From: Macrostomum lignano
Taxonomy: Eukaryota
Direction: 5' to 3'
NCBI GenBank assembly: GCA_002269645.1
Contig: NIVC01000657.1
Location: forward strand, 143,289-207,288
Length of the DNA stretch: 64,000 bases
Shown here: positions 30,370-63,985 of the stretch, piece by piece
Layout of the letters: every line of letters begins with the position of its first letter
How positions within the stretch are numbered: position 1 is the stretch's first letter
Translations under genes and position numbers: made by a program
The notes under the pieces: model-generated
Databases searched by the model: none
Seen by the model: the letters and a program-made list of their open reading frames with translations, nothing else
Told to the model about the DNA's origin: nothing

Positions 30370-31462
30370 TTATCGAGGCGGCCGTTTGTCGAACAGGTTA
30401 ATGAATGACAGGTATTTAGTTCGGTGCTCCGCCTTAGCCGGCACAATGTGACCAGCCGGGTGACCGAAGAACGACAATTGGCCAAACGTTGGCAGCAGGG
30501 CTTCCGTCATCTCCCTGGGTATCACCTGATTAAATATAAGGGGCAACACAAAACAAAATTGTAACAATTATACTATCTGTTGAACTGATTGAGCATTTTA
30601 TAGCATTTTAGCACTATCAACCTCTTCTACTGGTAAGCTTGTACAGTGTATGTTCCTTGTCTCTTCCCTCCCGCTTCCCATTCTCTTCCCTCCCGCTTCC
30701 CTGTCTCTTCCCTTCGGCTTCCCTGCCTCTTCCCTCCCGCTTCCCTGTCTCTTCCCTCCCGCTTCCCTGTCTCTTTCCTCCCGCTTCCCAGTCTCTTCCC
30801 TCCCGCTTCCCTGTCTTTTCCCTCCCGCTTCCCTGTCTCTTCCTCGTGCTTCCCAGTTTTATTCTATTAATAGAATATTCTATTTTTCTGGCGGTTCGCA
30901 ACCAACTCACCTTGTCAACCTCCCCGCTAACGACCATACAGGGCGTATCGACTCTTTTATCGTAATACTTATTGTGCCCGCTGCAGGGACTTTTGAATGG
31001 CGCGAACAGGATAGCAAATTTCGGCAGAAGCGCCGGCTCCTCGTTCTCTAAGTGTCGCAGTACAATATAGGCCATAGCGGCGCCCTGGCTGAAGCCCATC
31101 AGGCCGTCGTAGGCGTGCTTCCTCAACTGGGCCACAACCAGCTTCAAAGACTCTTCCAATCCGTGCTCCCAGTCACTTTGCTCTGAGGCATTGAATCCGC
31201 CAGTAGGTTTGGAGAACCACCAGGCCCGCTCGGTGCCAGCGGAGCCGCCAGTCAGGCACAACAGGCCGCTATTGTTGCTGACGCCGCTCAAATCGACATC
31301 GGCAGCCGACGGCGAATCAACCAAATGCGGCGCGTCGATAAAATCGTAGCGAATAGTTCGAAAAGTATTCGTAGTCTTCTTAACTAGTTTGCGGAATGCG
31401 CCAGTCTTTTGGCGAAACGAACTGCCAGTCTGACGATAGCCGTGCAGGCACAGTATTCTCAT
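30370..31462 (-). CDS. OVCA2: OVCA2/FSH1-family serine hydrolase (235 aa from the ATG; open frame extends 47 codons upstream to 31603)
   Basis: Exons (minus) 30911-31462 and 30370-30525. MRILCLHGYRQ, FIDAPH, RAWWFS, nucleophile GFSQG, GEVD and HPAGHIVP give an intact Ser-Asp-His triad. Confidence 0.9.
30645..30855. repeat. ~22-bp pyrimidine-rich minisatellite (CTTCCCTCCCGCTTCCCTGTCT)
   Basis: Visible units in the OVCA2 intron. Confidence 0.9.
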
Positions 31463-31709
31463 GCTGTCGTCCTCCTCTTCTTCCTCTTTCTCTAATTCCG
31501 CTTGTTTGGTGTCTTTTGCTGCAACTTCTGCAACAAGCGTGTCGCCACCTGCTGCTGCTGGCACCGCTGCTACAGAATCCAATGCGGAGTTGATTGGGTC
31601 GGACTGGAAAAGGCAATGTTGGCGTGGCAATTGCGGTAACATGAGCAGGGCGGATAAGCAGTGGATAATCACTGGCTTAGCTGAAGGGAAGTTGCGAAGA
31701 GACGAGAGA

Positions 31710-32170: not shown

Positions 32171-32569
32171 CGAATAGGAAATATGATAGTGACATATAAG
32201 TAGGATAAGAAGAAAGCAGAAATCCTGATAAAAAATCAATTTTTTTGAAAGCCAAGTCAGCGAATGAAACACAGATAATGATCTGAAAAATGAGTTTTTG
32301 CGAATGTTGAAAAAATAACAAAAATTGGCTTATTCAGTTTAGCTAGTGCAAAAAAACCAGAACGTCATTACCTAATCTTTATAAACACATTGTTGGAAAA
32401 TAATGACCTAAGCTTAATTTTAAGCAGTCGTCTAAAGCCCTTAGCTTACAAAAATGGACCAAAAATGGGTGGAAAACTGTGTAACAGTTCTTAATTAAAC
32501 CTGTTTTGCCTAACCTACTGCTTGATTTTAAATTAACCGATAGCACACTCTGCTCACTGAATGCATAAA

Positions 32570-33305
<736 letters not shown>

Positions 33306-34667
33306 TATATGTGTAGATGTAAGCAATAAATAAAAATAGCTCCGGGAAAATCCATTTATCCAAACATTATCCTGGAACCACTACGAGAAACTAATTGACA
33401 AGTCAATCGCAACTTTACTATAGATCAATTATAGTGTTTAATAATCTAGGCATTAGGATAATGGCTTTCATATTGACACGAGCAGTCAATCACTCTGGGA
33501 AGGAGAAACGCGGCAAATGCGCAAGATAAATGCGAGGAGCGGAATTGGGAAGAATATCCTTTAGATTGACGAAGGAAGAAGTCATTGGGAGTATGGATAT
33601 TTATGTCAACACCAGAAATGTAATAAGTTCTAAAAGCGTTCAAGTCGCTCACTACCCACCACATACTATAGCTATAGTTTAAAGCGATCTTAAGTCCTAA
33701 TAATCAACTAACGATATGTAGCGAAAAAATCTTTAAAGACTTGGAATCAAATTTAAAATTGACATAGCAAAAACTGTCCTAACGAAAAGTAAATTATTAA
33801 TTTTCATAATTTTCAGTACAGTTATACTACGTTGCGTTAATCCTTACCAACCTAAAGTCAAATTTGTTCTAGATTTGTTCAAACTACATATGCATAGATG
33901 CACGAAACGAGAAATTTCTATGCAAAGTTGGCAAAGCAATCTGAAGAAAATTTTTAGAACATATCAGACTGCACCTGCCGGAAACTACCAATAGTTTTTA
34001 AAAAAAGATTAAAATGAGGTATCATATAGACTATGAGCTTTCGCTCTAAGCATTTGAGAAACCTCCCAATGAACTAGTCTGTATTTAAGCAGTTCCCCCT
34101 TCCCATGAGCCTTGGTATCTCAGCACTTCCCCATCCCACAGCTGCGATGCAAATGACTTGACCGCAATTTATAAACACAAGCCTATATTTAGACTGAGTG
34201 CAATATAATTTGATCATTCAACTGGGCCATGCTTGTTAATTGAGCCCAGGCGCTTATCTACACATTAAAATTTAACACGTGGCTTGGTAAAAAATGAATG
34301 ATAGAAAAAATCGTTTCACGAGTTTATGCGAGTGCACAACAGTGTCCCAACGTGCCTAAAGTGATTCAAACACTCCTTAATTTATTCACCTCTCATTAGC
34401 TACTCCGATGTACATATGCAATTGCACGTTCAAGTGATGCCTTAATTAATAGTAGAGCCAGCTACAAAGTGAAGTTGATTGACAAAAAGGCACGGTGCAA
34501 AGACTCATGTGCCTCTCTATATTGCTCAAATACTACCAACCAATGAGAATACTTCTGAGCGAGTTGCCAATAGAAACGCCTCGATTCCACCAACATATAC
34601 TTACTATGAGACAGTTATTATCGCATAAAACCAAACCAGGAAGCATCGCTCTGCACTTAGCTGCATA

Positions 34668-36940
34668 GTGAAATTAAGGTTTTTTTTAATACACGCCTTG
34701 TACAAACTGGATTCAATTACGATAGACAACGTTACTTATCAGTTTCCAGATAGACCTACCGAATTACTAGAACAATGCACTTCGCAGCATGGTAATAATG
34801 AATCTGCTGAACAACGCAACCTGCTATGCACCACGGCTACTCTGCTTGGCGCCTTGTACGCTTATCCGTTTCCAGCGGTGTTAGCTATCGGCGTCATTGG
34901 CAACATACTGACTATAGTTGTACTCGGCTTCAAAAGCATCCAAGTGAGTAGGCACAGCGTCTACCTATGCGGTGTAGCATTTGCTGACACGCTTCACCTG
35001 CTATTCGTCGGATTAGGATGGCTATTCTTAGCCAAAGGCTTGCCGTGGGCAACGGGGGGCAGCAGCTACGTTTATTTGATGAACTTCGGAGTTTGGCCGT
35101 GTCGTATGTACAGATTCTTGGCCGGTCTGGCCAGCATACACGCCTATAATTCGTTTTTACTCGTGGCAGCCGATCGATGCCTAGCTGTGTACTTTCCATT
35201 CAAATTTATTAACGTTAGCAGCAATACGGCAATTAGACTGAGTCTGGCTACTCTGCTTGTCAGTCTGCTTAGCGCTCTACCGTTTGTTGTTATGATGGGA
35301 TATGTCACCGTGCCGGAGCAGAAACTCGTCTTCTGCTGGCTCACCGTCAATAGCGGCGCTTTTCAACTATACGACGCTCTCTATGTCAAAGGTTAGTTAA
35401 TTGAAAACCCTTTTCCTGTTTCTTACCTATACTCAGCAACATTGAAAATTCGCCACTCCATGCGCCAGTGAGCAATTTCTCTTGGACTATTCTGAAATAA
35501 AATATCTGAGAAAACTGATCGGGGTAGCTTTAATCTGTCCAACCCTCGCACACCGCTGCCCCCAATTCATTCCTCAACTCAAGTCTGCCGCGAAGTATAG
35601 TAGCTGAGTTGAGTCACTCGCAAAGAGTGAGAGATTTCATCTGCACTCACAAGTGGCGACCACAGATGGAATCTTCTGTGATGGCGACTTTTCGATGTTG
35701 CTGGGTGTATTAAAAGTGGCTCTGATGGTAGCCCAGCAACTGACACTCTGGGAGGCTGGCCCAGCTATTGACACTCTGGGAGGCTAGCCCAGCAACTGAG
35801 GATCTGGGAGTCTGGCCCAGCAACTGACACTCTGGAAGGCTGGTCCAGCAACTGACACTCCGGGCTGGCCCAGCAACTGGGGATCTGAGAGGCTGGCCCA
35901 GCAACTGAGGATCTGGGAGGCTGGCCCAGCAACTGAGGATCTGGGAGGCTGGCCCAGCAACTGACACTCTGGAAGGCTGGCCCAGCAACTGAGGATCTGA
36001 GAGGCTGGCCCAGCAACTGACACTCTGGAAGGCTGGCCCAGCAACTGAGGATCTGGGAGGCTAGCCCAGCAACTGAGGATCTGGGAGGCTGGCCCAGCAA
36101 CTGACACTCTGGAAGGCTGGTCCAGCAACTGACACTCCGGGAGGCTGGCCCAGCAACTGGGGATCTGAGAGGCTGGCCCAGCAACTGAGGATCTGGGAGG
36201 CTGGCCCAGCAACTGAGGATCTGGGAGGCTGGCCCAGCAACTGACACTCTGGAAGGCTGGTCCAGCTACTGACACTCCGGGAGGCTGGCCCAGCAACTGA
36301 GGATCTGGAGATGTTGGAAGATAAGCCTGAGGATTAACAGGAGAAGCATCTCTAGGATTAGGGGAAGCAATTAAAAAATAAGAGATTTGGGCAGAAGAGA
36401 ACAAAAGTAGAGTTAATCAGGAAATGAGTTTTGTAAATAATCAGCGATATTTAGTGCTGAAGAAAAAGCAAAGTTAATTAATAAGTTTTTCCGCAACAAA
36501 TTGTTTCCAATCAAAAACATATTCCAGGCATCGCCCAGATGCTGCTGATATTCCTCATCAACCTGGCTCTGCTAATCAAAATGGCGCAGGTAACCCGCCA
36601 GCACAATCGCCTAGTAAATGGCGGAGCTAATCAGAGCAACATAATGCCGAAACAACTGGAGACGGAAGAAATGAAAGCCACAATAATGATAGTACTGCTA
36701 TCTGTGTTAGTTTTAATCTGTGCAGTACCAGCTGCCAGCCTGGGCCTAATCAACTACATCACTGTGTACATCAGCCACAATGCAAGCAATGGCCAGCTGC
36801 AGTTAATGTGGAACTGGCTAGATATCAGCTTATTCCTTGTGTTTCTAGAGCAAAGCACCAAGTGGATTGTCTATCTGGCGCAGAGCAGGACATTCCGACG
36901 AAAGATGATGATTTACCTGCGGTACAGGAGGCGCAGTTAA
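34668..36940 (+). CDS. Rhodopsin-like (class A) 7TM GPCR, orphan peptide-receptor-like; 5' end unresolved
   Basis: Exons about 34.7 kb-35391 and 36528-36940 (phase 1). TM1 GVIGNILTIVVL, TM2 YLCGVAFADTLHL, ECL1 WPCR, TM3 VAADRCLAVYFP, ECL2 FCW, TM6 LICAVP, helix 8 SRTFRRKM. Confidence 0.85.
35720..36308. repeat. 28-bp minisatellite (GGCTGGCCCAGCAACTGAGGATCTGGGA / ...GACACTCTGGAA)
   Basis: Visible units in the GPCR intron. Confidence 0.95.
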
Positions 36941-42204: not shown

Positions 42205-45200
42205 TTAGCTGTTGAAAGTGTCTTTCAGACTGGCAGTTTGCATTGGAATGCAGTCTTGCAGATTTTGTTTGAAGTCGTCAAGACTGCGCACTTCAATGCC
42301 CTGCAAAGGATATATATGTACACGAGTACAATTAGGGCAATGGTTGAAATATTGATAAGCACTTACTGCTAGTTTATCCTGTTAAAGCTTTACGCTATTT
42401 TTACTTAGATGACGAGACACTCAGATTTTTTAATTTGCCTGAGAGCCTAAAGGTACTGTATACCTGTAATTATTCATAACTACACGCTGAAGGCAACATT
42501 TCCAGTTTAAAAAAAAACAGAAAAGCGCATTTACACTCGTACAATGCTGCTGGCTCACCTGATAGGTAGCATAATAATCGTCCTGAGCATTAAAGGTGAA
42601 CTGCTGCCTATTGATTTTGTGAACACTCAGCACACGCCTGTCTTGCGAACCCTGTTTCAGCCATTTCTAAAATATATAGTTTACAGTGATTACATGTAAT
42701 ACAGATATGTACTACAATGTAAGTGGGAAGTTTTTGATTGGAAAAATCAAATAATCAAATCATTCGATTGGTACGAGCACTAGCTGATGAATAGCTTTGA
42801 CATAGATATTGTACGTCGTACATTGGGGCAGTAGTGGAAGGGCTGGGTAAATGTACATTGGGGCAGAAAGGAAAGGAGTCGAAGGACTGAGCAACAATAT
42901 GTGCATTGGGGTAAGGAGTGGAAAGTCTTGGAATTAAGCACATGTACATCGGGGCAGGAGTGGAAGGACTGGGCACATCTACATTTGGGTAGAAGTGGAA
43001 GGACTGGGACATGTACAATAGCCACACAGTACGAGCTATAACGACGTTGGTATGTATATTGCTGGGAAAATTTGTGCCAATGCGTCAAAGTCTTGAAACT
43101 TTAAACGTTCACTTCGGATTATCGAACGCTTACTAGTGGGTAAACAACTAGACAGCTCACCTTCCAATAATTGTAAAGATCCTTTTTGCTAATTCTATCC
43201 AGAATAGCTTTGACATTGGTGTCCAAACTATTGGTATCCCAGCTGAAATCGTAGTCGCCGCAGGTGATGTGTCGCCAGTACAGCTCATGCTGCCTGTTTA
43301 AATTTGGCGCAGTAAACAGACGTGTCGCAAGCTGCTGCACTCGACTCTTCATACCCGCCAGCTGCTCCTTGGTTATGGAATCCACTGTTTTACCGACGCA
43401 TGCGATTACCAACTCGATTGTTGTTTCAATCTGCGTGCAGATGTTTAGCAACAGGTCAATATTCATGCAGTAAAACAGCTTGCTACATGTCATTCTGAAT
43501 GTAAATCCGCAAGAAAATACAGTAGCAAAATATTCTGTCAGCCAAGGTCTCAAGAAACTGGGGCACAGCGTCAAAGGGCGTGTCTCTGAATCGTCCACCG
43601 GCAGTTAAAGAAACGCCGACTGAGAATGCCGTGTCCTTGCTGTGAATGCATATATCTACTGCATCTAATACCTAGAATAATTGCATGCAGAAGGCAGGTT
43701 GTGAGCGCGCAGGCACAACGCTTTCGACGACATGGTTCCACGGCCAATGCTCCGAGGCAATTCCGAGCGCGCCAATACTGTACGCAGGCACCCATGCACT
43801 CATTATACACACGCTCACACAGAGTGCACAGCTTGACCTTCTAATCGTCAGGCATGTACACTCTCTGCGCCTTGGGAGTTGGTCCTCATGGCTGTGGATA
43901 GCACGACGGCTCTTCTAATGAGAAGTTCAAACCAAGAGACTTACCGCAACGGGATGCGACTCGGAGACTAGCTCAATGACGATGCAATTGGCGTTGCAGC
44001 CAATCATCGTGTCCCACCTTAAATCGCGTTTTGTACAATCGGGCAGTTTTGTACAGAGTGTCAGAGCTTCTTTCAGTAGCCACAAGCAGCACTTATGCCA
44101 GAACCGACGGAAGAAGAAGTCGTCATATTTTGACGCTTGCTTTTTTAACCCTCCCGATATCGCAGTCGGCATCTGAAGCAGCAGGCCGCAAACCGACTTG
44201 GTCAATGCAGCGTCACCTTTCTTCAACCTCGTAGTCCGGCTGGTAAGTTCGATGCTTCTGTTAGTAGCAAAGTTCAACCGGATGAAATGGTGACTGCCCC
44301 TTGGTAGGAGTCGCTCAGAACAGCGCATAAAAAATGGATCCAATCGAAACGTGTCCGCTGGACGCCGCGAAAGTGGTGGAAGAACAGCTGTAATTGAGTC
44401 AACCAGTGAGATGACTTGCTCAGCAGTGAGATTGCCCAGCGCCAGAATCTCAGCATACAGTTCTGGCCGGCTGGGCCAGTTCTCGCGTTCCAGCGGAGTG
44501 GCATGAGCGGGATTGGAAAAGTGATGCGCTATGAAACTTGACGGATTGATTTCCACTTCTCGGTCTGGCTTTTGTGTTATGAGAGGAAAACATTGTGTAA
44601 TTATGGTTGAGCTACAAGTCAGTGCGACAGTTTACAATCAATGGTACCTCACTCACCCAGCGTTTGCGTATCCAAGGACTGATAGTCTCGCTGGATGTGT
44701 AAAAATCCAGCCAGATCCAAGCGATTTGCAATCTGGGATAAGTCTGAACAGGGCTGTAATGAAAACTTCTGCGCTCTAAGATTTCCAATGCGCTCCTGTG
44801 CAAAGGTGAACGAAATGTTCAAAATTAATTTGAATGCAATGAATGTAATTTTAAATTCAAAAAATAACTTTGATGGGCTACATCTTATATCCTGAGCCGC
44901 TGGACCCTAAGCACATACTGTACACAGGCACGCAGTCATAACAACCGCTCACACAAGGTTTACAGCGGCCCTGACTTTCTAATCGTCAGGTACGTACAGG
45001 GGCGTCGCCACCGGGGGGACAGGGGGGGGGAGGACATGCTAATGCTTTGTCCCCCCCCCACCCCATCTTCGTTGACCTGTAATGGAAATTAAAAATCGCT
45101 TCAGAGCGACAAAACATAGCGCCTGCGGACAAAAATGGTGCCTGCGGCGCTAAAATGAGTGCCTGTGAACCAAATTGAGTACCTGCCGGCGCTAAAATGG

Positions 45201-48200
45201 GTGCCTGCGGTGCTAAAATGAGTGCCTACTGCGCTAAAATGAGTGCCTGCTGCGCTAAAATGAGTGCCTGCGGTGCTAAAATGAGTGCCTACTGCGCTAA
45301 AATGAGTGCCTACTGCGCTAAAATGAGTGCCTGCGGTGCTAAAATGAGTGCCTACTGCGCTAAAATGAGTGCCTGCTGCGCTAAAATGAGTGCCTGCGGC
45401 GCTAAAATGAGTGCCTGCGGCGCTAAAATGAGTGCCTACTGCGCTAAAATGAGTGCCTGCGGTGCTAAAATGAGTGCCTACTGCGCTAAAATGAGTGCCT
45501 ACTGCGCTAAAATGAGTGCCTGCGGCGCTAAAATGAGTGCCTGCGGTGCTAAAATGAGTGCCTACTGCGCTAAAATGAGTGCCTGCTGCGCTAAAATGAG
45601 TGCCTGCGGCGCTAAAATGAGTGCCTGCGGCGCTAAAATGAGTGCCTACTGCGCTAAAATGAGTGCCTGCGGTGCTAAAATGAGTGCCTACTGCGCTAAA
45701 ATGAGTGCCTACTGCGCTAAAATGAGTGCCTGCGGCGCTAAAATGAGTGCCTGCGGCGCTAAAATGAGTGCCTGCGGCGCTAAAATGAGTGCCTGCGGCG
45801 CTAAAATGAGTGCCTGCGGTGCTAAAATGAGTGCCTGCGGTGCTAAAATGAGTGCCTGCGGTGCTAAAATGAGTGCCTGCGGCGCTAAAATGAGTGCCTG
45901 CGGCGCTAAAATGAGTGCCTGCGGTGCTAAAATGAGTGCCTGCGGTGCTAAAATGAGTGCCTGCGGTGCTAAAATGAGTGCCTGCGGTGCTAAAATGAGT
46001 GCCTACTGCGCTAAAATGAGTGCCTGCGGTGCTAAAATGAGTGCCTACTGCGCTAAAATGAGTGCCTGCGGCGCTAAAATGAGTGCCTGCGGTGCTAAAA
46101 TGAGTGCCTGCGGTGCTAAAATGAGTGCCTACTGCGCTAAAATGAGTGCCTGCGGCGCTAAAATGGGTGCCTGCGGTGCTAAAATGAGTGCCTGCGGTGC
46201 TAAAATGAGTGCCTGCGGTGCTAAAATGAGTGCCTGCGGTGCTAAAATGAGTGCCTACTGCGCTAAAATGAGTGCCTGCGGCGCTAAAATGAGTGCCTAC
46301 TGCGCTAAAATGAGTGCCTGCGGCGCTAAAATGAGTGCCTGCGGTGCTAAAATGAGTGCCTGCGGTGCTAAAATGAGTGCCTGCGGTGCTAAAATGAGTG
46401 CCTGCGGCGCTAAAATGGGTGCCTGCGGTGCTAAAATGAGTGCCTACTGCGCTAAAATGAGTGCCTGCGGCGCTAAAATGAGTGCCTGCGGTGCTAAAAT
46501 GAGTGCCTGCGGCGCTAAAATGAGTGCCTGCGGTGCTAAAATGGGTGCCTGCGGTGCTAAAATGAGTGCCTGTGGCGCTAAAATGGTGCCTGCGGCGCTA
46601 AAATGGTGCCTGCGGCGGTAAAATGGTGCCTGCGGCGGTAAAATGAGTGCCTGCGGCGGTAAAATGGTGCCTGCGGCGGTAAAATGGTGCCTGCGGCGGT
46701 AAAATGGGTGCCTGCGATGCTGAAATGAGTGCCTGCGGCGCTAAAATGAGTGCCTGCGGCGGTAAAATGAGTGCATGCGGCGCTAAAATGAGTGCCTGTG
46801 AACCAATTGAGTGCCTGCGGCGCTAAAATGGGTGCCTGCGGTGCTAAAATGGTCTCTGACGACACCGATTCTGAAAATAATGTACATATAGTAATTTAGT
46901 CATGTACATGTACATGTACAATTCTTGGCTTTGTCCCCCACCATAAAATCCATGGCAACGCCCCTGGGCATGTACACTCTCTTTGCCTTGGGGGTTGGCC
47001 CTCATGGCACCACAACCTCCCGGTCAATCTTCCGACCTTCCGCGGAATCGAACCAGGGGTCGTGTTGCGCGAGATTCAGACGCATTATAACTGAACTTTT
47101 CTGCCCACAGTGTTTTAAGGCAGTCTGCCAAGGGAAGACACACCTGGTTGAAGTAGTTTAAGGGAACTCGCAGCTCTGCAATGCGACCCAATGCGGCCAA
47201 CAAAAGGGCCGGTAGAGGCTCGCTGTGACCGCTGCAGCAAACCTGGATGCCGCTGCAGCTTCGAGAGACGCTCAGCTCAAGGTCGGCTTCAACCGCTTGC
47301 ATTTTCAGATCGGCCAGCTCTTCAGAAAATAGATTGGCCAGAATGCTGATCTGCAGAGACGAGGCCAGGGCGAGCCTCACAACGTCAACTGGAGGCAGCA
47401 GGTCGACGGATATGTAGGCAAGTTCGGTTTGGAACCGGTCATCTTGTCGGAACCAGAGATTAGTGCTGGATGAGCTGCCGTCTAGTGTACTTTGGCGTTT
47501 GATTTTACGAGGCCCGTTCGGCTGTGGGTTTTAATTATCGGTTTATACCGCAGATACTACAACATGATGAATACGGTGAACTCATTGCTCATAGCTCATT
47601 GGCCCATAGAGTAGAAAGCAGTTGAGTAGAAAGCTTCATTGGATAAGACTCGTTTATTGATCCAGCTCGCTTAAAATTTTTCTTGAACACGTCTCTTCAC
47701 AAATAGTCTTTTTACCTCCGCTTTAGACCTCTTCAGCCTAACGCTTTCATGCAATGCATATTCTCAATGACGCTGTTTAGTGCACATTACGTCTGCACCA
47801 ATTAGCAAGCTGTAGACGTCTACAAGTCACTCCAACTACGGTTCTTTACATAAAATAGCTATCACATTCTTGCTTGCTACTTCCTGACTGAAATTTAAGG
47901 AACTAAGCTGGCATGTCTAGTAGTCCGTGATCATAGCAAATGCGGTTAATGTCAGTATGACCAAAAATATGACCGCAGTCAAAAATTTATTTATTTACTG
48001 ACCTGATTAGTTGAGTCTCGGGGCTTTAAACTAAAATCTTTGCACACAAATGGCCTCGGTCTTGGCAAGGTGAACACAGTGTCAAGCTGACAGCTTGCAG
48101 TTGGCCATTCGGCTCTGCACAGAGCCAATAAGTTCTCAGACAGCTTCTCCAAGTTGTAAGGAGCTATGCCGTCGGGCTGGCAGCACAGCCTTCCGTCGGG

Positions 48201-50847
48201 AGCTGAAGTTGATGTGTTGAAGTTGCGATTGTTGCTTCTTAACTACAAAACACATGATTTACTATTCTTCGACTACAAAACCCTTTGGTCCCGCAAGAAA
48301 CAATAAAGAGATTTTAGCGCTTTTTTGTTGTTGAAATTCTTGCAAATTTAAGGCCGCATGATCAAGCGAAACTTGTGATGGCCAAGTTCTAATAAATCCA
48401 TGCACACTCTCTGTGTGCCTTGGGGTTAAATTGGTAGGACAGCCCCTAGAAAGATTCCTGGAACAAGCCCAAATTATGTAGACTAACACAATCGAAGCAT
48501 GGGTCGTGTGGTGCAAGAGTCAGACACGCTTCCGCTGAGCTGGCCTGCCTTAACAAAGTAAAGACAGCAATTCTCAACAGTTTTTAGACTCTCTGTTCGA
48601 AATTCATACGTTCGAAATGCCTCTGACTCTTGCGCAACACCACCGGCTTGTGCATAAAATTAGCGAGAAGGGGGTTGCTATGCGTACACGATTTACGCCT
48701 TCGAGAGCCAGAGGCACAGAGACTGTACATGCCTGACGATTAGTAAGTCAGGGCCGCTGTACACCCTGTGTGAGCGTGTGTATGAGTGTGTGTCTGTGTA
48801 CAGTATTGACGCTCTCGTATGTACGTGCTCAGGAGTCAGCGGAATGGCCAGAATTGCAGCGCTGGTTGTGGAACGATGTCGCCGAAGGCGTTGCGCCGTC
48901 CCTACCTACATCGCTCCTGCGAAGGTTTATACTTTTTATAACCCAAGTCTCACAGCTGAATAAGCATACGTGCTCCGTATGCCAGTCCAAGTCGGAAACG
49001 AACACTCTGCACTGGTCCACAGTCAGACAAGCCAGAAACCCGTTCATTTCCTCGGCAGAATAGCTCGAAAGCAAGTGCCTGGCTGAGAGCACATCCGCGA
49101 TCTCGTACCGGTGCAATCGAGTCGCGATGTTGAACTCGTCATTCACCAATGGCAGGCGTTTGAGCTTCAGAAAAGACGACCAATCGTCAACTTCAGGTAG
49201 GAAATGCGCCCGTCTATCTAACCTGACCTCATTGTGCAGCTGTTCGAAATGCTGCGCCTGACTGCGGATCATTGCCAGGTAGCGGAAGACTGCACTAATT
49301 ATCTGCGAGTCAATGAAGGTAAGTTGCGAAGAAAAAATTAGGAAATAAGTTTTTATAGGAGATCGCTCAATGAAGTGTACGAAGATACTGAAGCGATATT
49401 AAAGACACAGAAAAAGGTCCTTAGCTTATGTCGAAGCTTATGTGAAGCTCAAAGTTTTAATATTGATCTCAATTAGATTTCCGCACTTGATAAATTTAAC
49501 CAAACGTACCAAGTCTTCTGTTTCCACAGTATACTTCGTTGTTTCATCGCAGTGAAGAGCAATGCAGAACGTATCAAAATCAATGCAGCCTGTGTCCGTC
49601 AGGGACGCGCTATCTAGCTGAACTCCGAGATTAGTACGCAAATACTCCTTCAGACTGCCCAGTCCATCCCTGCCAAACAGATACTTCACTAATAGATCGG
49701 GCGATTGTTTGTGCAGATCCGTCTGATCTGGCAGCGGGAACACAATGAATATGCCGCCCAAGTTCATGCGCTTGCCGCGAATCTGTGCATAAGTAGCAGG
49801 GGTGAGTGGATGCAGTGGATGCAGTAATCCGCACTGCTAGACACAATTTCTATGTTTGTATTCTTCGCCTCAAATCCACTGTTTTTCACTGTAAACTACC
49901 AGAGGAAGAACACCCTGAAAATTAGCCAGAGTAAAAGGCCAGTGACGAACGAGGCCAGAGCAATTACCAATCCCAATTACCTTGGTTCCCCCTAACGCAG
50001 TGTATGATCCCTCCAACGGATGTTGATCCTTCGAGCGTACTCGAGAGTCAGTCGGGGTTGAAAAATCAAATTTTGTGGCGGCAGTCAGGCTCTGAAATAA
50101 AGAGTTCGGAGTTCTCATTTAGGGATTAGACGCCTGTAGTTTGTCGCAGTTTAAATTGGAGTCGGCTATTTTTTTTTAATACCTCGCTGTAGCATGCTAT
50201 TTGTTCATTGAATGTCATCCCGTACATACCACAAGCTCGTCAGTTGAGCGACCATCTTCCAAAGCCATTCGCCTCCGGCAGTTTGAGTTGAAATGCCGCT
50301 TGTGGAATTCAGCTAGCCTATCGCACAGTTCCTCGATCTGAAACAACTCGACTGTGCGCCGGCTCGGTTGAACCATCCGATTGTAGGGGTGACTCGAATT
50401 TCCCGAACAACGCTGCAGCCAATTCAAAGAGGATAGTTGTTGCTTGTACTTTTCCTTTTTGATTAAATGCTTGATTCTGTTCGCAGAAAATTCCGGTGTT
50501 GTAATGCTTTTGATCAACTGTTTGAGCACCTTTGATACGTTGTCTGAGGATGTTATTTTGTAGCTGAACTCAGTTCGGTCATCGGCAACTCTCACACTGC
50601 CAGTCAAGCCGATTGTAGAATCCGTTTGCATGGCAACCATGCCTGCCAGCAGTTCAGCCAGTCCCAGACAGTCTGGCGGATCGTGCAAGCGACCAACACC
50701 GATGGTGAGGCAGAGCAGCGATTTTCGATCGAGCGTGTCCTCAGTTTGGCTGACTAGACAGGCCGAGTAATTAGACGCTGTTTCTATGGCAACGCACTTC
50801 GACTGCAATGGTGCCGGAACATCTTTTAATATTTTGCCGATTTCCAT
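42205..50847 (-). CDS. Insulin-degrading-enzyme-like (M16A) pseudo-protease, copy A, about 1053 aa, frame intact
   Basis: Exons (minus) 50230-50847, 49981-50091, 49510-49782, 48954-49302, 48003-48202, 47144-47521, 44657-44795, 43945-44564, 43161-43430, 42559-42666, 42205-42300 total 3162 nt with no stop. IDE-like blocks GRLHDPPDCLGL, SGNSSHPY, FPLPD..PDLLVKYLFG.DGLGSL, LWFRQDDRFQ, ILALGNLT, LDDFKQNL. HxxEH position reads ELLAG. Confidence 0.85.
43660..43935 (-). mobile_element. SINE family 1 copy (5'-truncated)
   Basis: GTGTACATGCCTGACGATTAGAAGGTCAAGCTGTGCAC and GTGGAACCATGTCGTCGAAAGCGTTGTGCC match the 48.7 kb copy. Confidence 0.75.
44900..47095 (-). mobile_element. SINE family 1 copy split in two (47095-46967 head, 44996-44900 body) by a MITE
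   Basis: Head with GGTTCGATTCC at about 47043-47053; the body resumes at 44996 with ...CCTGACGATTAGAAAGTCAGGGCCGCTGTAAAC. Confidence 0.78.
44997..46966. mobile_element. hAT-like MITE carrying a 1.7-kb 21-bp array (GCCTGCGGYGCTAAAATGAGT)
   Basis: TIRs CAGGGGCGTCGCCA (44997-45010) and TGGCAACGCCCCTG (46953-46966), 13/14 match; 8-bp flanks GGTACGTA / GGCATGTA (6/8); array at about 45135-46850. Confidence 0.8.
48330..48925. mobile_element. Two divergently oriented SINE family 1 copies (minus about 48330-48545, decayed; plus about 48610-48925)
   Basis: tRNA-like heads form the inverted repeat GTGGTGCAAGAGTCAGA / TCTGACTCTTGCGCAACACCAC; hairpin motif at 48724-48763. Confidence 0.68.
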
Positions 50848-51678: not shown

Positions 51679-54600
51679 ATGGCTCAATCAGGGAATGCGG
51701 TAAGTTTATATAGACCTTAAGAACGTAATTTTTACGATGTCCACAATTGCATTTTAGAGGATGTCAGTTTCTCAGAAGAAAATTAATAGTAGTTGTTTCA
51801 TAAAAAAATATTTTATACCACTACTAGACTGATGCAGCAGCCAGTGTGTCTCAGAGAGTCGACAACCTGCCTGGGCCGAAGAAGTGCACCTACAGAGCCA
51901 TCGAGCTGACAACCGGTGCCACCGCCTGTCTAATTCAAGAAGCTGAAGACGCCGACCCTTACGGACGTCCGTCGCAGTCAAATTTGATTGTCAGCCTTGG
52001 CGTCGGTCGTCAGCAAGATCCGCCAGACTGTCGTGGCCTGGCCGAGCTCTGCGCCGAACTGACGGTGCTCGAGCTTAACCAAAACTTTCTTTGTCAAAGC
52101 ATTCTCGACGATTTGACTTCTTACATAATTCATTTGGAATCGTTTCATCTCGAAAGCTTCTTAGAGGCTTTGTGCGCTGGAATTCGAAACCCCCGATTTG
52201 AAGAGGCCAACATAAAAAGTCTGCTTCACTGCCTTCAGTCTGGCCGATACAAACAAAGCTGGCCAGCTCTGGAGTTTCTGCAGCGCTGCTCGGGGAACAG
52301 CTCCTCAGCTCACCCATTCTATCGGCTTGCTCAACTGACGTCAGCCGAGCGAACTGTTGAATCATTGGAGATCAGTGAGCTTAGAAAACGACTGATTGAA
52401 TTTCACGAACGATACTACTCCGGCAATCTGCTGCGTATTGTGGCTGTTGATTCAAGATCGCTGGACACATTGGAGGCAAGTGTTCCTGTTCAAATATACG
52501 TTTAAAAAGAAGTCAAGCAGATTCTTCTAGCTGAAAGTATCCCAGCTACAAATGAAGCATGTAACAATCAATTTTAGAGCATTATTGTGACCACATTTGG
52601 CGGCATACCCAATCGTTCGGCTCCTAAAGTGGACATCAGCTCTCGAGAATTGGAGGACGTGAAAGTAAAATCGGGCGGAATCAAGGTAAGCATTCGAGTG
52701 GATTGAAACAAACAATAGCCTGTTTCAAACAATAAGAGAAACATAAAATGACTCTTTGCGCTGTTCAATCCCAGATTCGAGGCAAGAGCATGAACGTGGA
52801 CGGAATTCATCTCGTGTTTCCTCTGCCAGACCAATCCAGCTTGAGTAGCATTGCACCGGATCTTTATGTGAAGCATTTGCTGCGCAGCAAGCATGTCGGC
52901 AGCCTTGAAGCAAGTCTAAACTTGCACGGATTTAGCTTGAACTCTGCCCGGCTGATGGATTTCGGACAAGTTGGATTCGATTTCTTCTGCATTTCTGTGC
53001 AGTGCAATGCTGAAAATAATCAGATAGAAGACGAAAACATGGTCAGTTTTAATTTTTGTTATCTCTAACGATTGCTGGTTCAGTGTGTGACAGTAGTTGA
53101 GTGGCATGACCCTACTTCGAAGTAGATGCCAAGGCCCATGGGAGGTATTGCTGAAACTCTGTGTCTCATGGAGAGTTGTTCAGATGCCTTGAGCCAAAGC
53201 TCATAGGAACTCTCATATTTTAGGGTGGATACCTGGCTTTTAGAGCATCATTTAGAGCGACTGTACAAGGGAAAAACCTAAATGTAGTTTAAATAAAAAA
53301 AATGTACTCCTTTCTTTGTTGCCTTCCAAACGAGGGGCGCAGATTGCTAGTCTAAACATGAAAATACATTGACTTTATTCCTCGAATTCTCTACAGGCCA
53401 TCAAAATAGTGTTTCGCTACTTGGCCATGATTCGCAGTGTTGGCCCACTAAATTGGCTACACAATGAGCTTCGCTTGACTTTGCAACGCGAATTCGCACC
53501 GAAAGGAAAGCTGGAGGAGTTTGAGCCCATGGATCCTATGATTAATCTGCTACTGCATCTGGCATCTGACGATTATTCGTTAGCAACTCGGCTTCAAAGA
53601 TTTTCACAGCGCGACGCTTTAACAGCTCGACACCTGATCACTGAGTACTCGGCTCAGGCCATTGCAGACTTTCTAACCTTTTTGACGCCCGACAGGTGTA
53701 TTGTGTACGTCTCTGATATTGGTTGGAATAGCAAGCCCGCTTGCAACTACCAGAGTAAGCTTCTATTGGTCTATGACGGACGGATGTATTTCACGCTGTG
53801 GGGTTGTAGCGCCGTAGTGGGTTGGAGCCTTAGTGGTTAGAGCGTTAGACTCACGACTGATAGGTTGCACTCAGAACAATTTGTGTCCTTGAACAAGACA
53901 CTCTGCATTAACTCTACACTGTTTCAGTTCAACCAGCTGTAAAATGAGTGCCAGCATTAGCTGGTGTAATTGAGGGTGTGTGTGTTGCGACCCCCCCCCC
54001 CAGTCCTTGGACTGAACTAAGTAAGCAGTCTTCGGGATGCGCCGCGCAATAGCTGCGGCTGAGCTGTCGGTTGCACATCTGGCCATTAGGATAGGTGTAA
54101 TCATTATTATTATTATTCACGCTTGGACACAGAGTAACATACTTGACGATCGATAAATTCAATGCTGCTGTACATTCCATTTAATTGTGTTCCTCCGTAC
54201 GTATTTGTGTTCGTGTTTGTGCCTCAATGGTCTGCGGAATGGGTATGACTGCTTGTCTGACTTCCAGCCGTGTCGAAGCTCCCCAGCTACTAATTAACAT
54301 TAAGTCTCACATCTAATTACCGAAAGACTTAACGTCAATGCTTAAACAGTAGTATTTAAAGACGTCTTAATCTTGACCTTGCAGCTCCCAGTGGCAAGCT
54401 CTGCTGCGTGCCGGAAGGTCAGCAGGCTGAGTACTCCACCGAAAAGCTGTCACCAGCTCTTTTGAACCTCTGTTCAGCTCCGTGGCCGAAACAAGACTGC
54501 GATTTGGATAGAGAGTTCAAGATGCCGCATTCAAAGCCATTTATGCCTTCGGATATTAGTTTAAGACCGAGAGTTAGCAAAGCTCAGGTAAGAACTTTGA

Positions 54601-57356
54601 TTTGATATGTAGTCAAATTACAAGGTTGAACGAAAACTTTAATGTACTTTTGATTAAAGCTGTTTATCAGTCAATCTTCGATTAATAAAAGCTAAAATCG
54701 GTGCTTTTGCTACTTCTTTTATAATCTTCTAATAAAACTTCATACTAACATCTTAATCAGGATTGCAATAATTTGCTGTCGATAGTAAACAAAAGCTATG
54801 AAAAGTTACTTTTTTCAGTAATTATTACCAAGTTTGTTTAACCATGTAATACTCGTACAACTGGACCTCATCTGAGGACAAAAAAAGATAAAATCGCATT
54901 TTCACGAAGTTGTGTCAGCTCTTAATTGATCCCAACAGGCGTGCGTCACAATTTCTTTATTTGAACACCTGCTGCTTATCCGCATTTTCCCTCAGCTTCC
55001 GGGGCCTAGGCAGCTTCGCATACCACCAATGCCGAACTCGGTTTCGTCAAACTCCCGACTCTGGTTCAGACAGGACGACAGGTTTCAGTCCGATTTGGCC
55101 TACATTTCAATCGACCTAATTCCTCCAATTGAATGCAGTCCAAAGAATCAAATTATCTTGGAAATTTTGGTTCAACTATTTTCTAAAGCGTTGCACAAGC
55201 TCAAGAAGCAAGCTGCCGAAGTCTGTATGGAGTTGAGCATCTCCCGTAGCAGCAACGGTATCCAGCTGTGCTTTTCCGGATACAACGAACCGCTGCTCAA
55301 GTTAATAACGACTGCTCTGCATCAGATTGCCGATCTGAAGATCACCAAAGAAAGCGTTCACAAGGTCTGCTGTGGCGTTATTCATATCCTTTAAAGACTT
55401 GTCAAATTTTACTTTAATTACATACTTTGCCTATCAATACTAATTTCAGGTCGGCTCAAAGGTTTTGCACCTTGCAGATGAATCGGCGAGCAAAGATGAA
55501 GAAGTCGACCAGCTCGCGTGCCAGTTGAACTTGGCTGGCTACTCGCATATGCAGCAGAAACTGGATGGGAGCAGTCTCAATGGTGAGCAGTTATACTGTT
55601 GTTTCGTCAAAAGGCATATCTGCTTGCACTATCCAATTTTGCGACACTCTAGGCGTACCAATCAAGGATTTAATGTCCGTTGCCAGTTACTTTTGCGAAG
55701 CCGCCAAAACAGTACAAAAACAGCCGAGCAAAAGCCCAAGACCGGTGCGAAATCTGCACCGGGTCTGTTTGCTGACATCCTGGTGTTTGGCAACGCTACC
55801 GCGGACGATGCAGTCAAAGCTGCTCAATCGATCCTGACTGCCCTGCCGTCGCTCTCGTCAACAGCAAAGATGACATCGAATCCTAAAGACCAGCAGCGTC
55901 GCCCTGAGCACCTTCTTAGCAAAGGCAGTTACAGTACAGTGCAACTTGGAGGCGCTGAAAAATGCGTGGCTGTCAGTCAGAGCGACTGCTACAGCAGCAC
56001 CTCCTGCGTCTGCGCCATTCTCATTCAAATTCCATTAGCAAAAGCAAAGCCTCCAATATCGATGAGTGCCGCAACGAAAGCGCTAGGGAAGAGTTTTTCA
56101 CGCGAGCAAGTCACGATTGTCTGCTACAGATGATGCTAGCAGCTGCTGTTGCTACGCCTTCTGACAGGATTGAAAGTAAAATATCGCTTGGTTACGGCGC
56201 GAACTGTGTCATATTTCAGAAGATCATCGAGCAGTCACCTGCTAAGGTAAGTTTCAAGCATTTTTTGCCAAGTTTGCCATTTTCCCCAGTAGTTAGGTTT
56301 TCCTGTCATGGTGATAATTCCTTGTGAACTCAGAATTATAGCCTATTATAAGTAAACTTAAGTCTTGTCTTAAGTCTTAGGGTCGTAGCCTAGTGGTTAT
56401 AGCGTCACACTCAGCACTGAAAGATGCGGACCCACGCGAAATAAACCTTATGTCCTTGAGCAAGACACTTAACTCTGCATCGTTGCTTCAGTTAAACCAG
56501 CTGCAAAATGGGCAACAGCATTAGCTGGGGTTATTGATGGTGTGTGTAGCGACTCCCAGTCCTTACGCAGCGAAACGAGCCGTATGAAGGGATTGAGGGC
56601 AGGAATTACTATTATAAAATCGTGCTGATTTGAAGCCCCAGAATGAAAAATCTTTTTTAGATGGAAAAAGAGATCGAGCCCTTTATTGCTAAGATCGGCA
56701 ATCACCTGACTGCCATGTCTTCGGAGTCTTTAGAGACCTACAAGCAGAAAGCTCTTCAATCAATGCAAGCATTGACAGTCCTAAAAGCATGGAGCAGCAT
56801 CACTCAATGTACTGGACTCGCATCATGTCCAGAAATTTCGAATTCAGTTGGGATGACCCGCGAGCGATGGACTGTCTGCGCGCTATTGTGGACAGTATAA
56901 AAAAGGAGGACCTGTTGAACTACTGGAAGGTAAACGTCTGGCTTTACATATAAATTCAATTCAATTTTGTGACAGCCAACTGTCGGTAAATCCCTGATCA
57001 ATAAATAAATGAGTGATTTAGTTGCTACTGCACTCCAAGACGTGCAAACCCTTTTATCAGTAAGACGTCAATAATCATCCCCAACCTAACGCCCCTAAAT
57101 CTATAGAAATGGTTTTGTTCGGAATCTAAAGACCGCTCCATGCTCTGTCTCCAAAACTATTGCCGAATGGACATCGACAAGTCCGGAACGTCTGTAAGTA
57201 TTTTTTACCGTGCCTTTTTATTTATCGTTTTAGCCGTCTATCCGTCAAAAAATGTTGCAGGGCAAAGTCATCGCGGATCTGGAGAAGTTCAAGAACTCTC
57301 TTGAGCCGGCTGCCCTACCGATACCAAGCTGTCTCAAGACTGTGCACGACGCCTAA
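51679..57356 (+). CDS. IDE-like (M16A) pseudo-protease, copy B; three single-base frameshifts (young pseudogene or assembly errors)
   Basis: Exons 51679-51699, 51828-52475, 52578-52685, 52775-53041, 53397-53754, 54385-54587, 54996-55364, 55450-55582, 55653-56246, 56661-56929, 57107-57193, 57261-57356; intron positions and phases match copy A. HxxEH position reads ELCAE. One base is missing near 55720, 56090 and 56780. Confidence 0.78.
53820..54060 (+). mobile_element. SINE family 2 (tRNA head plus CORE-like domain)
   Basis: A-box-like GAGCCTTAGTGGTTAG; TGTGTCCTTGAACAAGACACT...CAGCTGTAAAATGAG resembles the CORE-SINE domain; second copy at 56378-56600. Confidence 0.7.
56378..56600 (+). mobile_element. 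SINE family 2 (tRNA head plus CORE-like domain)
   Basis: TAGCCTAGTGGTTA A box; TATGTCCTTGAGCAAGACACTTAACTCT...CAGCTGCAAAATGGG; collinear with 53820-54060. Confidence 0.7.
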
Positions 57357-58039: not shown

Positions 58040-59946
58040 TTGTTTATTCGATAGAGGCGATAACAAAGGAAGCATTTCGCATTGGGTGAGTATCAAGGCA
58101 ATGACCGATGCGACAATTGGAAGAGATACAAAATTACGGGCCGAAAAGAACGACTGCAATTTGGTGATGATCATTCATGGAAGGTGACATTGGAGCATGT
58201 GGACAGCTTTGGACCAAAATCCTCTCTTGACTTTAAAGGGGATACGACGTATTTTACGGGATCAGTTTGATGAAGTGAACGTGAGCGAAACAACTGTGAG
58301 TCTTACTTTGGATGTACCTAGGTCGTGATGCAAATTTTGTGGCACAGTTCAAGTATTCAGCATTGGCCCCTTTTCAACAGGCGTTACTATGAGTGATCTG
58401 CAGTCCATCGTAGATGTTTTTCTCAACTCGTCTAAAGTCGAGTCCCAGCCGCAGACGGAAGAGGCATCACCTTGGATTTTATTCGCTGATATTCTGGTGC
58501 TCATGATGATGCTATCACGTCTGCTCAATCCGTTCTGTCAGTGATTCCAGCTTTGTCAGCTGAGACAGCAACAGAATTAGAGTCCGATTTTTCTAGATTC
58601 CGTCGCCCAGAGCGCCACCTTTGCAAGGGAAGCCACAGCACCATCCAGCGGTGCCAGGACCAAGAATCACACAGAGCTCATCGCCAACGACATGCTGCCT
58701 CTACTTGCGGCTTCGTCATTCAGATTCCTGTGGCGATGGACGAGCCTCCGTGGCGATGACGAATGCTATGAAGAAACTGGGAGAAGAGTTCTGCAACCGA
58801 GCCTGTCACAGCTATCTGCTACAGTATATATTGGAAGTTTCTAATGGAGTGGAAATATGCAAAGTCTTCCGAGCCGTATCGCGAGGTTACAGTGGCAATT
58901 GTTTCCTGGTTGAAATGAGCCACGACAATTCACCTGCAAAGGTTGGACAAACGAAAACCTTACTGAGTGATATTTGATGCGCGATACTAATTTATACGTG
59001 TCATTTGGAAGTAACCAGTCTCTTTGCGCAATGATATTCATTTTTGAGATTAAAATTGTCGAATAATATTTTTACATTATTTCCCTGCTACTTTCTCTCA
59101 GATGGAGAAGCAAATCGAGTCTTTTATTGCTGAGATCGAAAATCACTTGACTGCAATGTCTTCGGAGTCTTTAGAGACCTACAAGCAGAAAGCTCTTCAA
59201 GCAATGCAAGCATTGACAGTCCCTAAAAGCATTGAGCAGCAGTACTCAATGTACATGTACTGGACTCGTATCATGTCCAGCAACTTCGAATTCACCTGGG
59301 ATGACCCGCGAGCGATGGACTGTCTGCGCGCCATTGTGGACAGCATCGGAAAGGAGGACCTGTTGAACTACTGGAAGGTATATTTTTGGTTGATTAGGTC
59401 GCTGAGTCGATTACCGATCGACTTCTATCAATCTTATTAGTGTCATGGATCTTGAGCTGAGTCATGCACGAACACCTGTTGTTAGTTATATTCTACTTAA
59501 ACAGGGCGCACTTTGTGTTAGCTGGTTTTGTGCTTGGTACATTTGTATCTCCTTAAAAGGTCACGTCAAGGATGATCACCGGGGTTGCTTAATTGTTTAT
59601 TTCCATAGCCTTTCAATTTCTTTATCTTCTCCCCGCAGAAATGGTTCTGTTTCGGATCGCCAGATCGAACTGTTTTCGAGCTACAGAACTATTCAAAACT
59701 AGCGATTGATGAATCTGGAACATCCGTAAGTGTTGAAAAATCTTTACAAACCTAGTTATACCTTCACGCATGTAATTTGTTATTTTAAATTTGAATATAC
59801 CATAGTTTCAAAATTTGTTTCCTAGACTTTGCTTTTAAATAACTCATAATCGTGATTTCTAAAATCATTTGTAGGGCACAATCATTTCCGACTTGGAGAC
59901 GTTAAAAAGTAGTCTGGAAGCATATCCAATACGATCACTTAATTGA
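58040..59946 (+). pseudogene. IDE-like copy C: C-terminal half only, disrupted
   Basis: Exons 58381-58941, 59102-59377, 59639-59725, 59875-59946 are homologous to the last four exons of B, plus decayed upstream bits at 58040-58300. About 13 nt (FGNA codons) deleted near 58500 and a one-base frameshift near 58750; no N-terminal exons found. Confidence 0.72.
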
Positions 59947-60689
59947 CTGTAGTTTGAAACTAGACATAACGCTCATGTATGCTTGCTGTACTACTGAATC
60001 AAATAAAATACGATTACGAAACATAAACTCGAGCCTTTTTTCATTAAGTAATTCGATCAGTTTTTAACTTATACGAGCTTATAAGAATAGTGACAATTAT
60101 TTCATTTTACGAGTACGAAGCGACGTCATTTGTTTTTTGTTTTCAATAAAAAAACTAATACAATATAATGTATGGCCATCAGTTGTGATAAATCTGAAAA
60201 ATGCGTTATCTACAGATCTACATGTACGAGTACTATCCGACAGATAGTCAACTGCCGGAGAGATGAGAGATGGAGATCACGCAGTTAAGAACATTCAATG
60301 TCTCAGGGATACCATACGGAGAACTTGTGCATTGTACGAAGCGTTTACGTACTTGGGGATGACAACCGAAACGATGAAGTGCATTGGAGCAGTTTTCAAT
60401 AGAAATTAGCTACTGCAACGCATCTAGTCTATTAAACTAAGACACTCGCGACTCGCCAGCGTTAATTTGGCGCTATTTATTACTTCTAATCTCAATACAA
60501 GAATGGCCAGAGACTAAAAGTCCTTTAAACTTTTATCATGGACATCAAAGTGGAATTTCAATTTATTTGGCATAAATTTACGCTTTACGAGCATAAGATT
60601 GTCTTAATCTACAATACGCCTATTTAAATTATATTTCGACGTAAAGCTAAAGGTCGACTGCAAGTTTTTCTCAGTCAGACTGTTCTAAA

Positions 60690-63361: not shown

Positions 63362-63409
63362 GTAAGAGAAATTTTAATTGTACAATTTTGCATGCACCCG
63401 CATTTTTTT

Positions 63410-63765: not shown

Positions 63766-63794
63766 CACCCGCGTTGGTCAAGTTCATGTAAATT

Positions 63795-63985
63795 CACAAT
63801 ATTGTCGTCATTAATGAACGACTGCACAATAGGACAGTAGACGTCATTAATGAACGACTGCACAATAGGACAGTAGACGTCATTAATGAACGACTGCACA
63901 ATAGGACAGTAGACGTCATTAATGAACGACTGCACAATAGGACAGTAGACGTCATTATGAACGACTGCACAATAGGACAGTAGAA
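63795..63985. repeat. 36-bp minisatellite (GTCATTAATGAACGACTGCACAATAGGACAGTAGAC)
   Basis: About 5 visible units. Confidence 0.93.

Follow-up and report, generated by a model that had tools for sequence, protein, structure and literature searches.

A probably selection-maintained, non-catalytic paralogue of insulin-degrading enzyme in the flatworm Macrostomum lignano

Introduction

Can a gene for an insulin-degrading enzyme (IDE) homologue that has lost its active site, and whose introns are full of repeats, still encode a protein that selection keeps? The question is raised by copy A, one member of a tandem gene family in a 64,000-nucleotide (nt) stretch of Macrostomum lignano DNA, which we call the window. 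A preliminary description of the window had read copy A as 11 exons that splice in phase into a non-catalytic four-domain protein under strong purifying selection, and had taken its integrity as the best argument that the cluster is functional. We consider it likely that copy A is a selection-maintained, already annotated gene for a 1053-amino-acid (aa), four-domain, catalytically dead IDE paralogue of the M16A type within a tandem family, and we infer a non-catalytic role for its product.

Results

Gene model of copy A

Copy A lies on the minus strand and runs from 50847 to 42205, with its ATG at 50847-50845 and its stop codon at 42207-42205. The coding sequence (CDS) of 3162 nt is spread over 11 exons (Table 1) and comprises 1053 codons and a stop, with no internal stops. 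The introns are 92-2348 nt long, and all of them (10/10) have GT...AG borders. Splice reconstruction in the window, using the junctions of annotated proteins, thus gave the same stop-free, in-phase product of about 1053 aa and the same canonical splice sites as the preliminary description.

An independent first splice model built from open segments and GT/AG sites (11 exons, all introns in phase 0, 3138 nt) was dropped. It differs from the adopted model at the exon 4/5 junction and in the frame of exon 7. At both places the adopted model gives peptides homologous to copy B, the adjacent member of the family (…HVCLFSSPDGRLCC… versus …PACNYQTPSGKLCC… and …SQIANRLDLAGFLHIQ… versus …DQLACQLNLAGYSHMQ…). 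Because the resulting peptides are homologous to copy B and to annotated proteins, the junctions proposed earlier are taken as correct.

Eight of the 10 introns are in phase 0, and several exons (among exons 2, 3, 6, 9 and 10) are symmetric. Two older predictions, P0002 and P0003, skip exon 2, exons 2 and 3, or exon 7 and remain in frame; the exon 7 skip uses an acceptor at 44568, 4 nt upstream.

Loss of the M16 active site

HMMER comparison with solved structures aligned copy A residues 21-641 and 888-1008 to insulin-degrading enzyme (E=2.5e-26) and set GLAELLAGMV of copy A opposite GLSHF(C)EHML of IDE. For the active site, copy A was aligned with its 58 closest IDE-like proteins, drawn from an exhaustive HMMER scan that covered 1.84 billion representatives. 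The His, Glu and His of the HxxEH motif and the distal Glu residues (E182 and E189 of IDE) are conserved in every one of these nearest relatives (58/58); the corresponding residues of copy A are E, A, G, L and K. In the multiple alignment, a 12-residue deletion follows the motif helix of copy A directly and a 2-residue deletion lies beside the distal Glu columns. E182 is lost in both the pairwise HMMER and the multiple alignment. The call at E189 depends on the alignment: pairwise HMMER can set E133 of copy A opposite it, and the multiple alignment gives K. Domain 4 contributes an R/Y pair to complete the active site of M16 enzymes (PMC12731061). Copy A keeps the Arg (R872) and has Cys in place of the Tyr (C879), and copy B has the reverse, in a region where the alignment is gappy.

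Since copy A keeps neither of the two zinc-binding histidines, nor the catalytic glutamate, nor the distal glutamates, these alignments indicate that copy A cannot use the zinc-dependent mechanism of M16 peptidases. The dead active site of the preliminary description is upheld: HxxEH has become ELLAG and the distal Glu residues are replaced, at positions invariant in the relatives. Judged by its residues, copy A is a homologue within M16A that lacks the defining motifs of an active member and fits the class of pseudopeptidases.

Predicted four-domain fold

Pfam recognised PF00675 (Peptidase_M16) on exon 1 at 24.4 bits, with a cut-off of 22.3, and PF16187, the middle domain, at 75.9 bits. A structure was modelled with AlphaFold2 on a 62-sequence alignment built from matches of the exhaustive scan. 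The model has a mean predicted local distance difference test (pLDDT) score of 75.8 and a predicted template modelling (pTM) score of 0.74, and it shows four alpha/beta units. Foldseek matched it to human IDE structures over ~950 residues (E ~1e-48). Sequence similarity and the modelled single-chain, four-domain organisation both place copy A among the M16A (IDE-type) homologues. The earlier reading of a non-catalytic four-domain protein therefore agrees with the Pfam domains, the model, its full-length match to IDE and the lost catalytic residues.

Like human IDE (insulysin, M16A; PDB 2g47 and 3cww), the predicted protein is a single chain of ~1000 aa with four alpha/beta domains in identical order. 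Common to both are the blocks G-x-L-x-DPP-x-x-GLA, HP-x-x-(K/R), FP(I/L)PD and LWF(K/R)QDD(K/R)F. Unlike IDE, copy A has ELLAG for HxxEH, replaced distal Glu positions, a replaced Tyr of the R/Y pair, the 12-residue deletion and insertions in domains 3 and 4; identity between the two is only 17-25%.

Selection on copy A

The assembly holds three further loci of the copy A type, L001, L003 and L004. L001 (protein P0001) is intact, as is L003 (P0007), whose exons 6-11 are identical to those of the window. L004 (P0008) lies at a contig end (NIVC01002162.1, 6283-7958); its exons 1 and 2 carry 1-nt deletions, and the donor of exon 3 is lost. The stretch upstream of it contains 6 indels in 210 bp, and its lesions look like poor consensus quality at an error-rich contig end, not decay. 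The DV1 line carries duplicated large chromosomes and its assembly is redundant (PMC5730564), so the three loci are regarded as alleles or recent duplicates of copy A.

Synonymous (dS) and nonsynonymous (dN) divergence were estimated by the method of Nei and Gojobori between the window and the two other intact copies of the same assembly, with a binomial test for synonymous excess. This comparison was confined to copy A-type loci; for copies A and B, whose proteins share 36-38% identity, saturation at synonymous sites is expected. The window and L001 differ by 25 synonymous and 17 nonsynonymous changes (dS 0.035, dN 0.007, omega 0.20, p=4e-7). For the window and L003 the counts are 15 and 16 (dS 0.021, dN 0.0066, omega 0.31, p=2e-3), and for L001 and L003 they are 28 and 17 (dS 0.040, dN 0.0070, omega 0.18, p=2e-8). 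Between the window and L001, the exons are 1.33% diverged with no indel in 3162 nt, and the introns are 2.78% diverged with 13 indel events in 3128 aligned nt (array-bearing intron 6 left out).

These values suggest that copy A is under moderate purifying selection, with its open reading frame (ORF) and splice sites retained. The strong purifying selection of the preliminary description stands as purifying, by omega of 0.18-0.31 and by the indel counts of exons and introns; it does not stand as strong, since an omega of 0.2-0.3 is moderate.

Two annotated proteins had been considered as signs of disrupted sister copies, and both were dropped. The odd C terminus of P0007 is an annotation choice, as the exon 11 DNA of L003 is identical to that of the window, and P0008, with its N-terminal truncation, belongs to L004, whose lesions lie in the error-rich contig end. 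L003 (NIVC01000654.1) is a mosaic relative to the window. The block that holds the identical exons 6-11 is ~98.6% identical and the copy B region is 99.4% identical, and divergence in exons 1-5 is 1-5%, exon 3 being 95% identical. This pattern points to exchange between duplicated chromosome copies by recombination or gene conversion, or else to a chimeric assembly.

Distribution and origin of the family

In the exhaustive scan, all family-level proteins (E <= 1e-125) came from M. lignano, in collections without other Macrostomum species. Two weaker matches at E<1e-30 also belong to M. lignano, and one of them (E=3.7e-40) is the canonical IDE of the worm. Generic IDEs follow after the M. lignano matches, at ~25% identity. 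An additional profile search returned only the known M. lignano proteins and one short match.

Copy A is 33-40% identical to the other members of the family (copy B and the Mlig021631/015450, Mlig028065 and Mlig000040 types). HxxEH is absent from all compared paralogues, which read AELCAE, ARLCQR, AELCHR, AELCQR or AQLCQR at this place and retain long ORFs. Because none of them has the motif, its loss probably preceded the diversification of the family; and because the loss is common to long-ORF paralogues that are only 33-40% identical, the ORFs appear to have been kept long after the site died. On a sister contig, at least four family genes stand in a row (consecutive accessions PAA48427-48430).

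The canonical IDE of M. lignano (Mlig002690/013555/011578; P0019) is the nearest relative of copy A outside the family, at 28% identity. Because of this position, the family most probably arose by duplication of that gene, its probable parent. Unlike copy A, the canonical enzyme has HFCEH and EREVQAVHSEH intact. In the simplest history, an IDE gene would have been duplicated in the Macrostomum lineage, its copy would then have lost catalysis, and tandem expansion would have followed.

Annotation and transcript evidence

The copy A interval matches positions 10001-18643 of L002 (NIVC01000657.1 of GCA_002269645.1, Mlig_3_7) base for base. The locus is already annotated there as a hypothetical protein, BOX15_Mlig016947g2 (PAA79004.1, here P0006), of 1055 aa. 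In the protein search, the top matches of copy A were M. lignano "hypothetical proteins" with a Peptidase_M16_M domain. P0006 is the 1053-aa model with two additional residues, VQ (GTGCAG), at the exon 10/11 junction. P0008 has VQ too, and P0001, with an identical 10/11 junction, is without it. The codons GTGCAG equal the first 3 and last 3 bases of intron 10 (42301-42558). No source of VQ (GT.CAR) was found within intron 10 of the window, and canonical splice-site pairs cannot yield it.

The GenBank annotation of the assembly draws on transcript evidence only, namely StringTie/TACO RNA-seq assemblies, mapped de novo transcripts and TransDecoder CDS calls (PMC5730564). Through this pipeline, the RNA-seq check of the splice junctions has in effect already been done by others. 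Locus-specific expression is not thereby proven for the window copy, because four loci that are >=97% identical share transcript clusters. Supplementary file 6 of a study on ploidy change (PMC12896417) has Mlig006322g2 (a copy-B-type fragment, "chrL") and Mlig028065g1 among its differentially expressed genes, so some of the cluster, at the least, is transcribed, and it lies on the large duplicated chromosome. Searches of the literature and of supplements turned up no paper on this gene or its family and nothing on copy A; only other family members were met, in one supplement. Copy A is an undescribed pseudopeptidase of a class already known, and it is present in databases as a hypothetical protein.

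Repeats in the introns of copy A

Four pieces resembling short interspersed nuclear elements (SINEs) and one long element with terminal inverted repeats (TIRs) lie in the introns of copy A (Table 1). Further SINE-like copies occur in the window near 9830, 24330 and 63545, and the dispersed copies are 72-90% identical. A tRNA origin of the SINE-like head was sought with ARAGORN and Rfam, which gave no tRNA call. The TIRs of the intron 6 element are 14 nt long and 93% complementary, and its interior is a 21-bp array with no transposase ORF. The 8-bp target duplication of this element is visible because the element landed inside the intron 6 SINE: its flanks GGTACGTA and GGCATGTA match the uninterrupted SINE GGCATGTA, and the intact SINE of intron 8 reads …TCAGGCATGTACACTC…. 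We take the element to belong to the hAT superfamily, by its 8-bp duplication and CAG terminus only. The preliminary description had counted four SINEs and a 2-kb miniature inverted-repeat transposable element (MITE) in these introns. The four SINE-like pieces and the TIR element are there; the tRNA head is unconfirmed, and 1970 bp is not miniature.

The introns of copy A are fluid and its exons are not. At L001, the minisatellite of intron 6 is only ~160 bp long and the intron measures 778 bp versus 2348 bp in the window; between loci, intron 2 has a 331-bp indel and intron 9 a difference of ~150 bp. Both the SINE-like copies and the hAT-like element, including its minisatellite, would be neutral passengers, usual in a repeat-rich genome. 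The invasion of the introns by repeats had been offered as an argument for constraint. TRF gave 33 rows of large tandem arrays on the window (overlapping rows may describe one array), and simple and tandem repeats account for 15% of the M. lignano genome (PMC5730564); repeats being normal in this genome, they add nothing to that argument.

A subterminal palindrome of a G-run and a C-run in the TIR element (45007-45076) gave the only Rfam matches, which were sub-threshold and to two microRNA precursor families (24 bits versus gathering thresholds of 58-83). These matches are almost certainly chance hairpins.

Neighbouring copies and the rest of the window

Copy B stands head to head with copy A (Table 1). 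Its frame is broken here by three 1-nt deletions near 55742, 56088 and 56779, in short homopolymers (CCC, GGG and CC). Each deletion is absent from at least one sister locus, and the three account for the truncation of the annotated product to 763 aa (P0013). The deletions are either real pseudogenisation or long-read consensus errors. With three frame-breaking deletions in copy B, the integrity of copy A does not carry over into an argument for a functional cluster, as had been proposed. Family proteins on sister contigs often start with C-terminal copy-B-like fragments fused to a full copy (P0004, P0018 and P0163).

Positions 350-36308 of the window are dense in minisatellite arrays with 19-85-bp units (for example 350-1434, 2952-4038, 11002-12039 and 28593-29145), and an (ATAG)n run lies at 32565-33307. 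These arrays and the (ATAG)n run account for the GC-skew spikes of the composition profile. Long ORFs at 26135-28539 (-), 30617-31600 (-), 34668-35396 (+) and 9348-10872 (-) are presumably genes upstream of the cluster. Candidate products are an IFT52-type intraflagellar transport protein, an FSH1/OVCA2-type serine hydrolase, a seven-transmembrane receptor and an amino-acid-transporter-like protein.

Table 1. Coordinates of copy A, its exons, its intron repeats and neighbouring family members in the window
Feature	Position	Strand	Description
Copy A gene	42205-50847	-	11 exons, 3162-nt CDS, 1053 aa; GenBank BOX15_Mlig016947g2 / PAA79004.1, contig NIVC01000657.1
Exon 1	50230-50847	-	618 nt; N-terminal Peptidase_M16 domain including the degenerate zinc motif
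ELLAG codons (E65-L-L-A-G69)	50641-50655	-	Stand where M16 peptidases have the zinc-binding/catalytic H-x-x-E-H
Exon 2	49981-50091	-	111 nt, phase 0-0
Exon 3	49510-49782	-	273 nt, phase 0-0
Exon 4	48954-49302	-	349 nt; donor 48953 leaves phase 1; junction backed by copy B homology (…HVCLFSSPDGRLCC…)
Exon 5	48003-48202	-	200 nt
Exon 6	47144-47521	-	378 nt; core of the Peptidase_M16_M match
Exon 7	44657-44795	-	139 nt; frame confirmed by copy B similarity; left out of older predictions P0002 and P0003
Exon 8	43945-44564	-	620 nt
Exon 9	43161-43430	-	270 nt
Exon 10	42559-42666	-	108 nt
Exon 11	42205-42300	-	96 nt with stop codon
SINE-like copy, intron 8	43775-43892	-	Dispersed-repeat match
SINE-like copy, intron 6	44860-47135	-	Halves 44860-44996 and 46967-47135, split by the TIR element; box-B-like GGTTCGATTCC in head
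Two SINE-like pieces, intron 4	~48395-48550, ~48600-48890		First oriented like the others, second inverted
Non-autonomous TIR element, intron 6	44997-46966		1970 bp; TIRs CAGGGGCGTCGCCA / TGGCAACGCCCCTG; 8-bp target duplication GGTACGTA / GGCATGTA
21-bp minisatellite	45121-46851		82.9 copies, inside the TIR element
Copy B	51828-57353	+	Head-to-head with A, start ~1 kb away; Mlig006322 type, 36-38% identical to A; motif AELCAE
Partial copy-B-like 3' duplicate	58448-59377	+	Between B and C; ~79% identical to copy B in best block
Copy C start	60684-64000	+	Cut by window end; probably Mlig021631/015450 type, by gene order on sister contig

Discussion

The gene model of copy A is right and agrees with the existing annotation, and its repeat-filled introns are unremarkable. 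As a dead IDE paralogue, the copy A protein may act as a non-catalytic "clamshell" that would enclose or bind peptides or unfolded segments uncut, as a holdase or a decoy; alternatively, it might be a regulatory partner of active IDE. Non-catalytic binding is plausible because inactive IDE still captures peptides and inactive M16 subunits are functional. Two studies report that IDE without activity goes on binding and chaperoning peptides and blocks aggregation (PMC3623905, PMC4521159). The engineered proteins concerned (E111Q and similar), which are reported to suppress aggregation of amyloid or alpha-synuclein, share with copy A an IDE scaffold without catalysis and are the model for the proposed mechanism. 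They are laboratory point mutants that keep the zinc ligands and chamber residues. Copy A is without the ligands and highly diverged; that it has kept binding is presumed.

Natural counterparts are found in M16B. Like copy A, the alpha subunit of mitochondrial processing peptidase (alpha-MPP) and core proteins I and II of the cytochrome bc1 complex have the M16 fold without a working HxxEH, and they are kept for non-catalytic substrate recognition or structure, in essential roles. Unlike copy A, they are half-size (~500 aa), paired with a second chain, of ancient origin and present in all mitochondria. Alpha-MPP works with a glycine-rich loop, whereas copy A would be a full four-domain M16A chain that is lineage-specific and tandemly expanded. 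In a 2024 review of metallo-pseudopeptidases, alpha-MPP is the sole M16 entry.

Several observations weigh against a selection-maintained, non-catalytic protein. The transcript clusters are common to the four nearly identical loci (>=97%), and the reads could stem from sister copies. The omega values of 0.2-0.3 come from copies within one species (alleles or recent duplicates) at a dS of ~0.02-0.04. Each comparison has no more than 31-45 substitutions, and the three are not independent of one another. The global TM-score of the model to IDE is only 0.44-0.49, with a root mean square deviation of ~14 Å. The low score may come from a different relative pose of the two halves, more open or more closed, together with low-confidence loops. 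Residues ~654-837 (part of domains 3-4) are low-confidence in the model, so the chamber geometry is not firmly established. The frame of neighbouring copy B is broken on this contig, and function cannot be claimed for the whole cluster. Finally, a binding, holdase or partner role for copy A is argued by analogy.

Copy A might instead be a young, unconstrained duplicate, an incipient pseudogene that is intact only through lack of time. Its sister copies are just 1-2% diverged in exons, and L004 and the adjacent copy B carry frame-breaking 1-nt indels. The synonymous excess is nevertheless significant (omega 0.18-0.31), 13 indel events in the introns stand against none in the exons, and the catalytic loss common to long-ORF paralogues at 33-40% identity argues that the dead state is old. 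L004, moreover, lies at a contig end rich in errors, where 210 bp contain 6 indels. We regard mere youth as a very unlikely explanation of the intact frame. Even less credible is that copy A is still a peptidase with non-canonical metal-binding or catalytic residues. Glu (E65) stands at the first His position, E133 can be aligned to IDE E189 in pairwise HMMER, and R872 of the R/Y pair is retained. Against this, the five canonical positions, invariant in the relatives, are replaced here, with Ala in place of the catalytic Glu and Gly in place of the second His, and the multiple alignment puts K at E189, beside a deletion. The replacements also differ among paralogues (ELLAG, ELCAE, RLCQR, ELCHR and ELCQR), so no new consensus site appears to have been fixed.

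The least improbable rival, although we think it unlikely, is that copy A is only an obligate partner of the active M. lignano IDE and no stand-alone binder. By analogy with alpha/beta-MPP, it would form a heterodimer that tunes allostery or substrate choice. M16 enzymes need two halves, inactive M16 subunits pair with active ones, M. lignano has retained a canonical IDE, and IDE is a homodimer with allosteric cross-talk. Yet the four predicted domains lie in one copy A chain, the closure of the chamber needs no partner, and copy A is only 24-28% identical to canonical IDE.

Beyond copy A itself, the tandem copies may, as a tentative and somewhat doubtful proposal, make up a Macrostomum family of dead full-length IDE-type "cages" that is tandemly expanded and fast diversifying. 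Its members would serve as peptide decoys or buffers, for insulin-like peptides or neuropeptides, or as modulators of active IDE. If the cage reading were true, we know of no earlier M16A pseudopeptidase family whose members have a dedicated non-proteolytic function.

The significance of copy A is modest: it is a tidy example in a tractable organism, with no unusual sequence architecture. Inactive protease homologues are a recognised class that is poorly understood. The inactive M16 examples found in the literature are half-size mitochondrial subunits, whereas copy A appears to be a single-chain, IDE-type protein devoid of the entire catalytic apparatus, probably maintained by selection and tandemly multiplied in one flatworm lineage. 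It may thus offer a natural experiment on what the IDE chamber does without proteolysis, be it binding, sequestration or chaperoning. RNA interference and transgenesis are available in M. lignano, a laboratory model, which makes this question testable.

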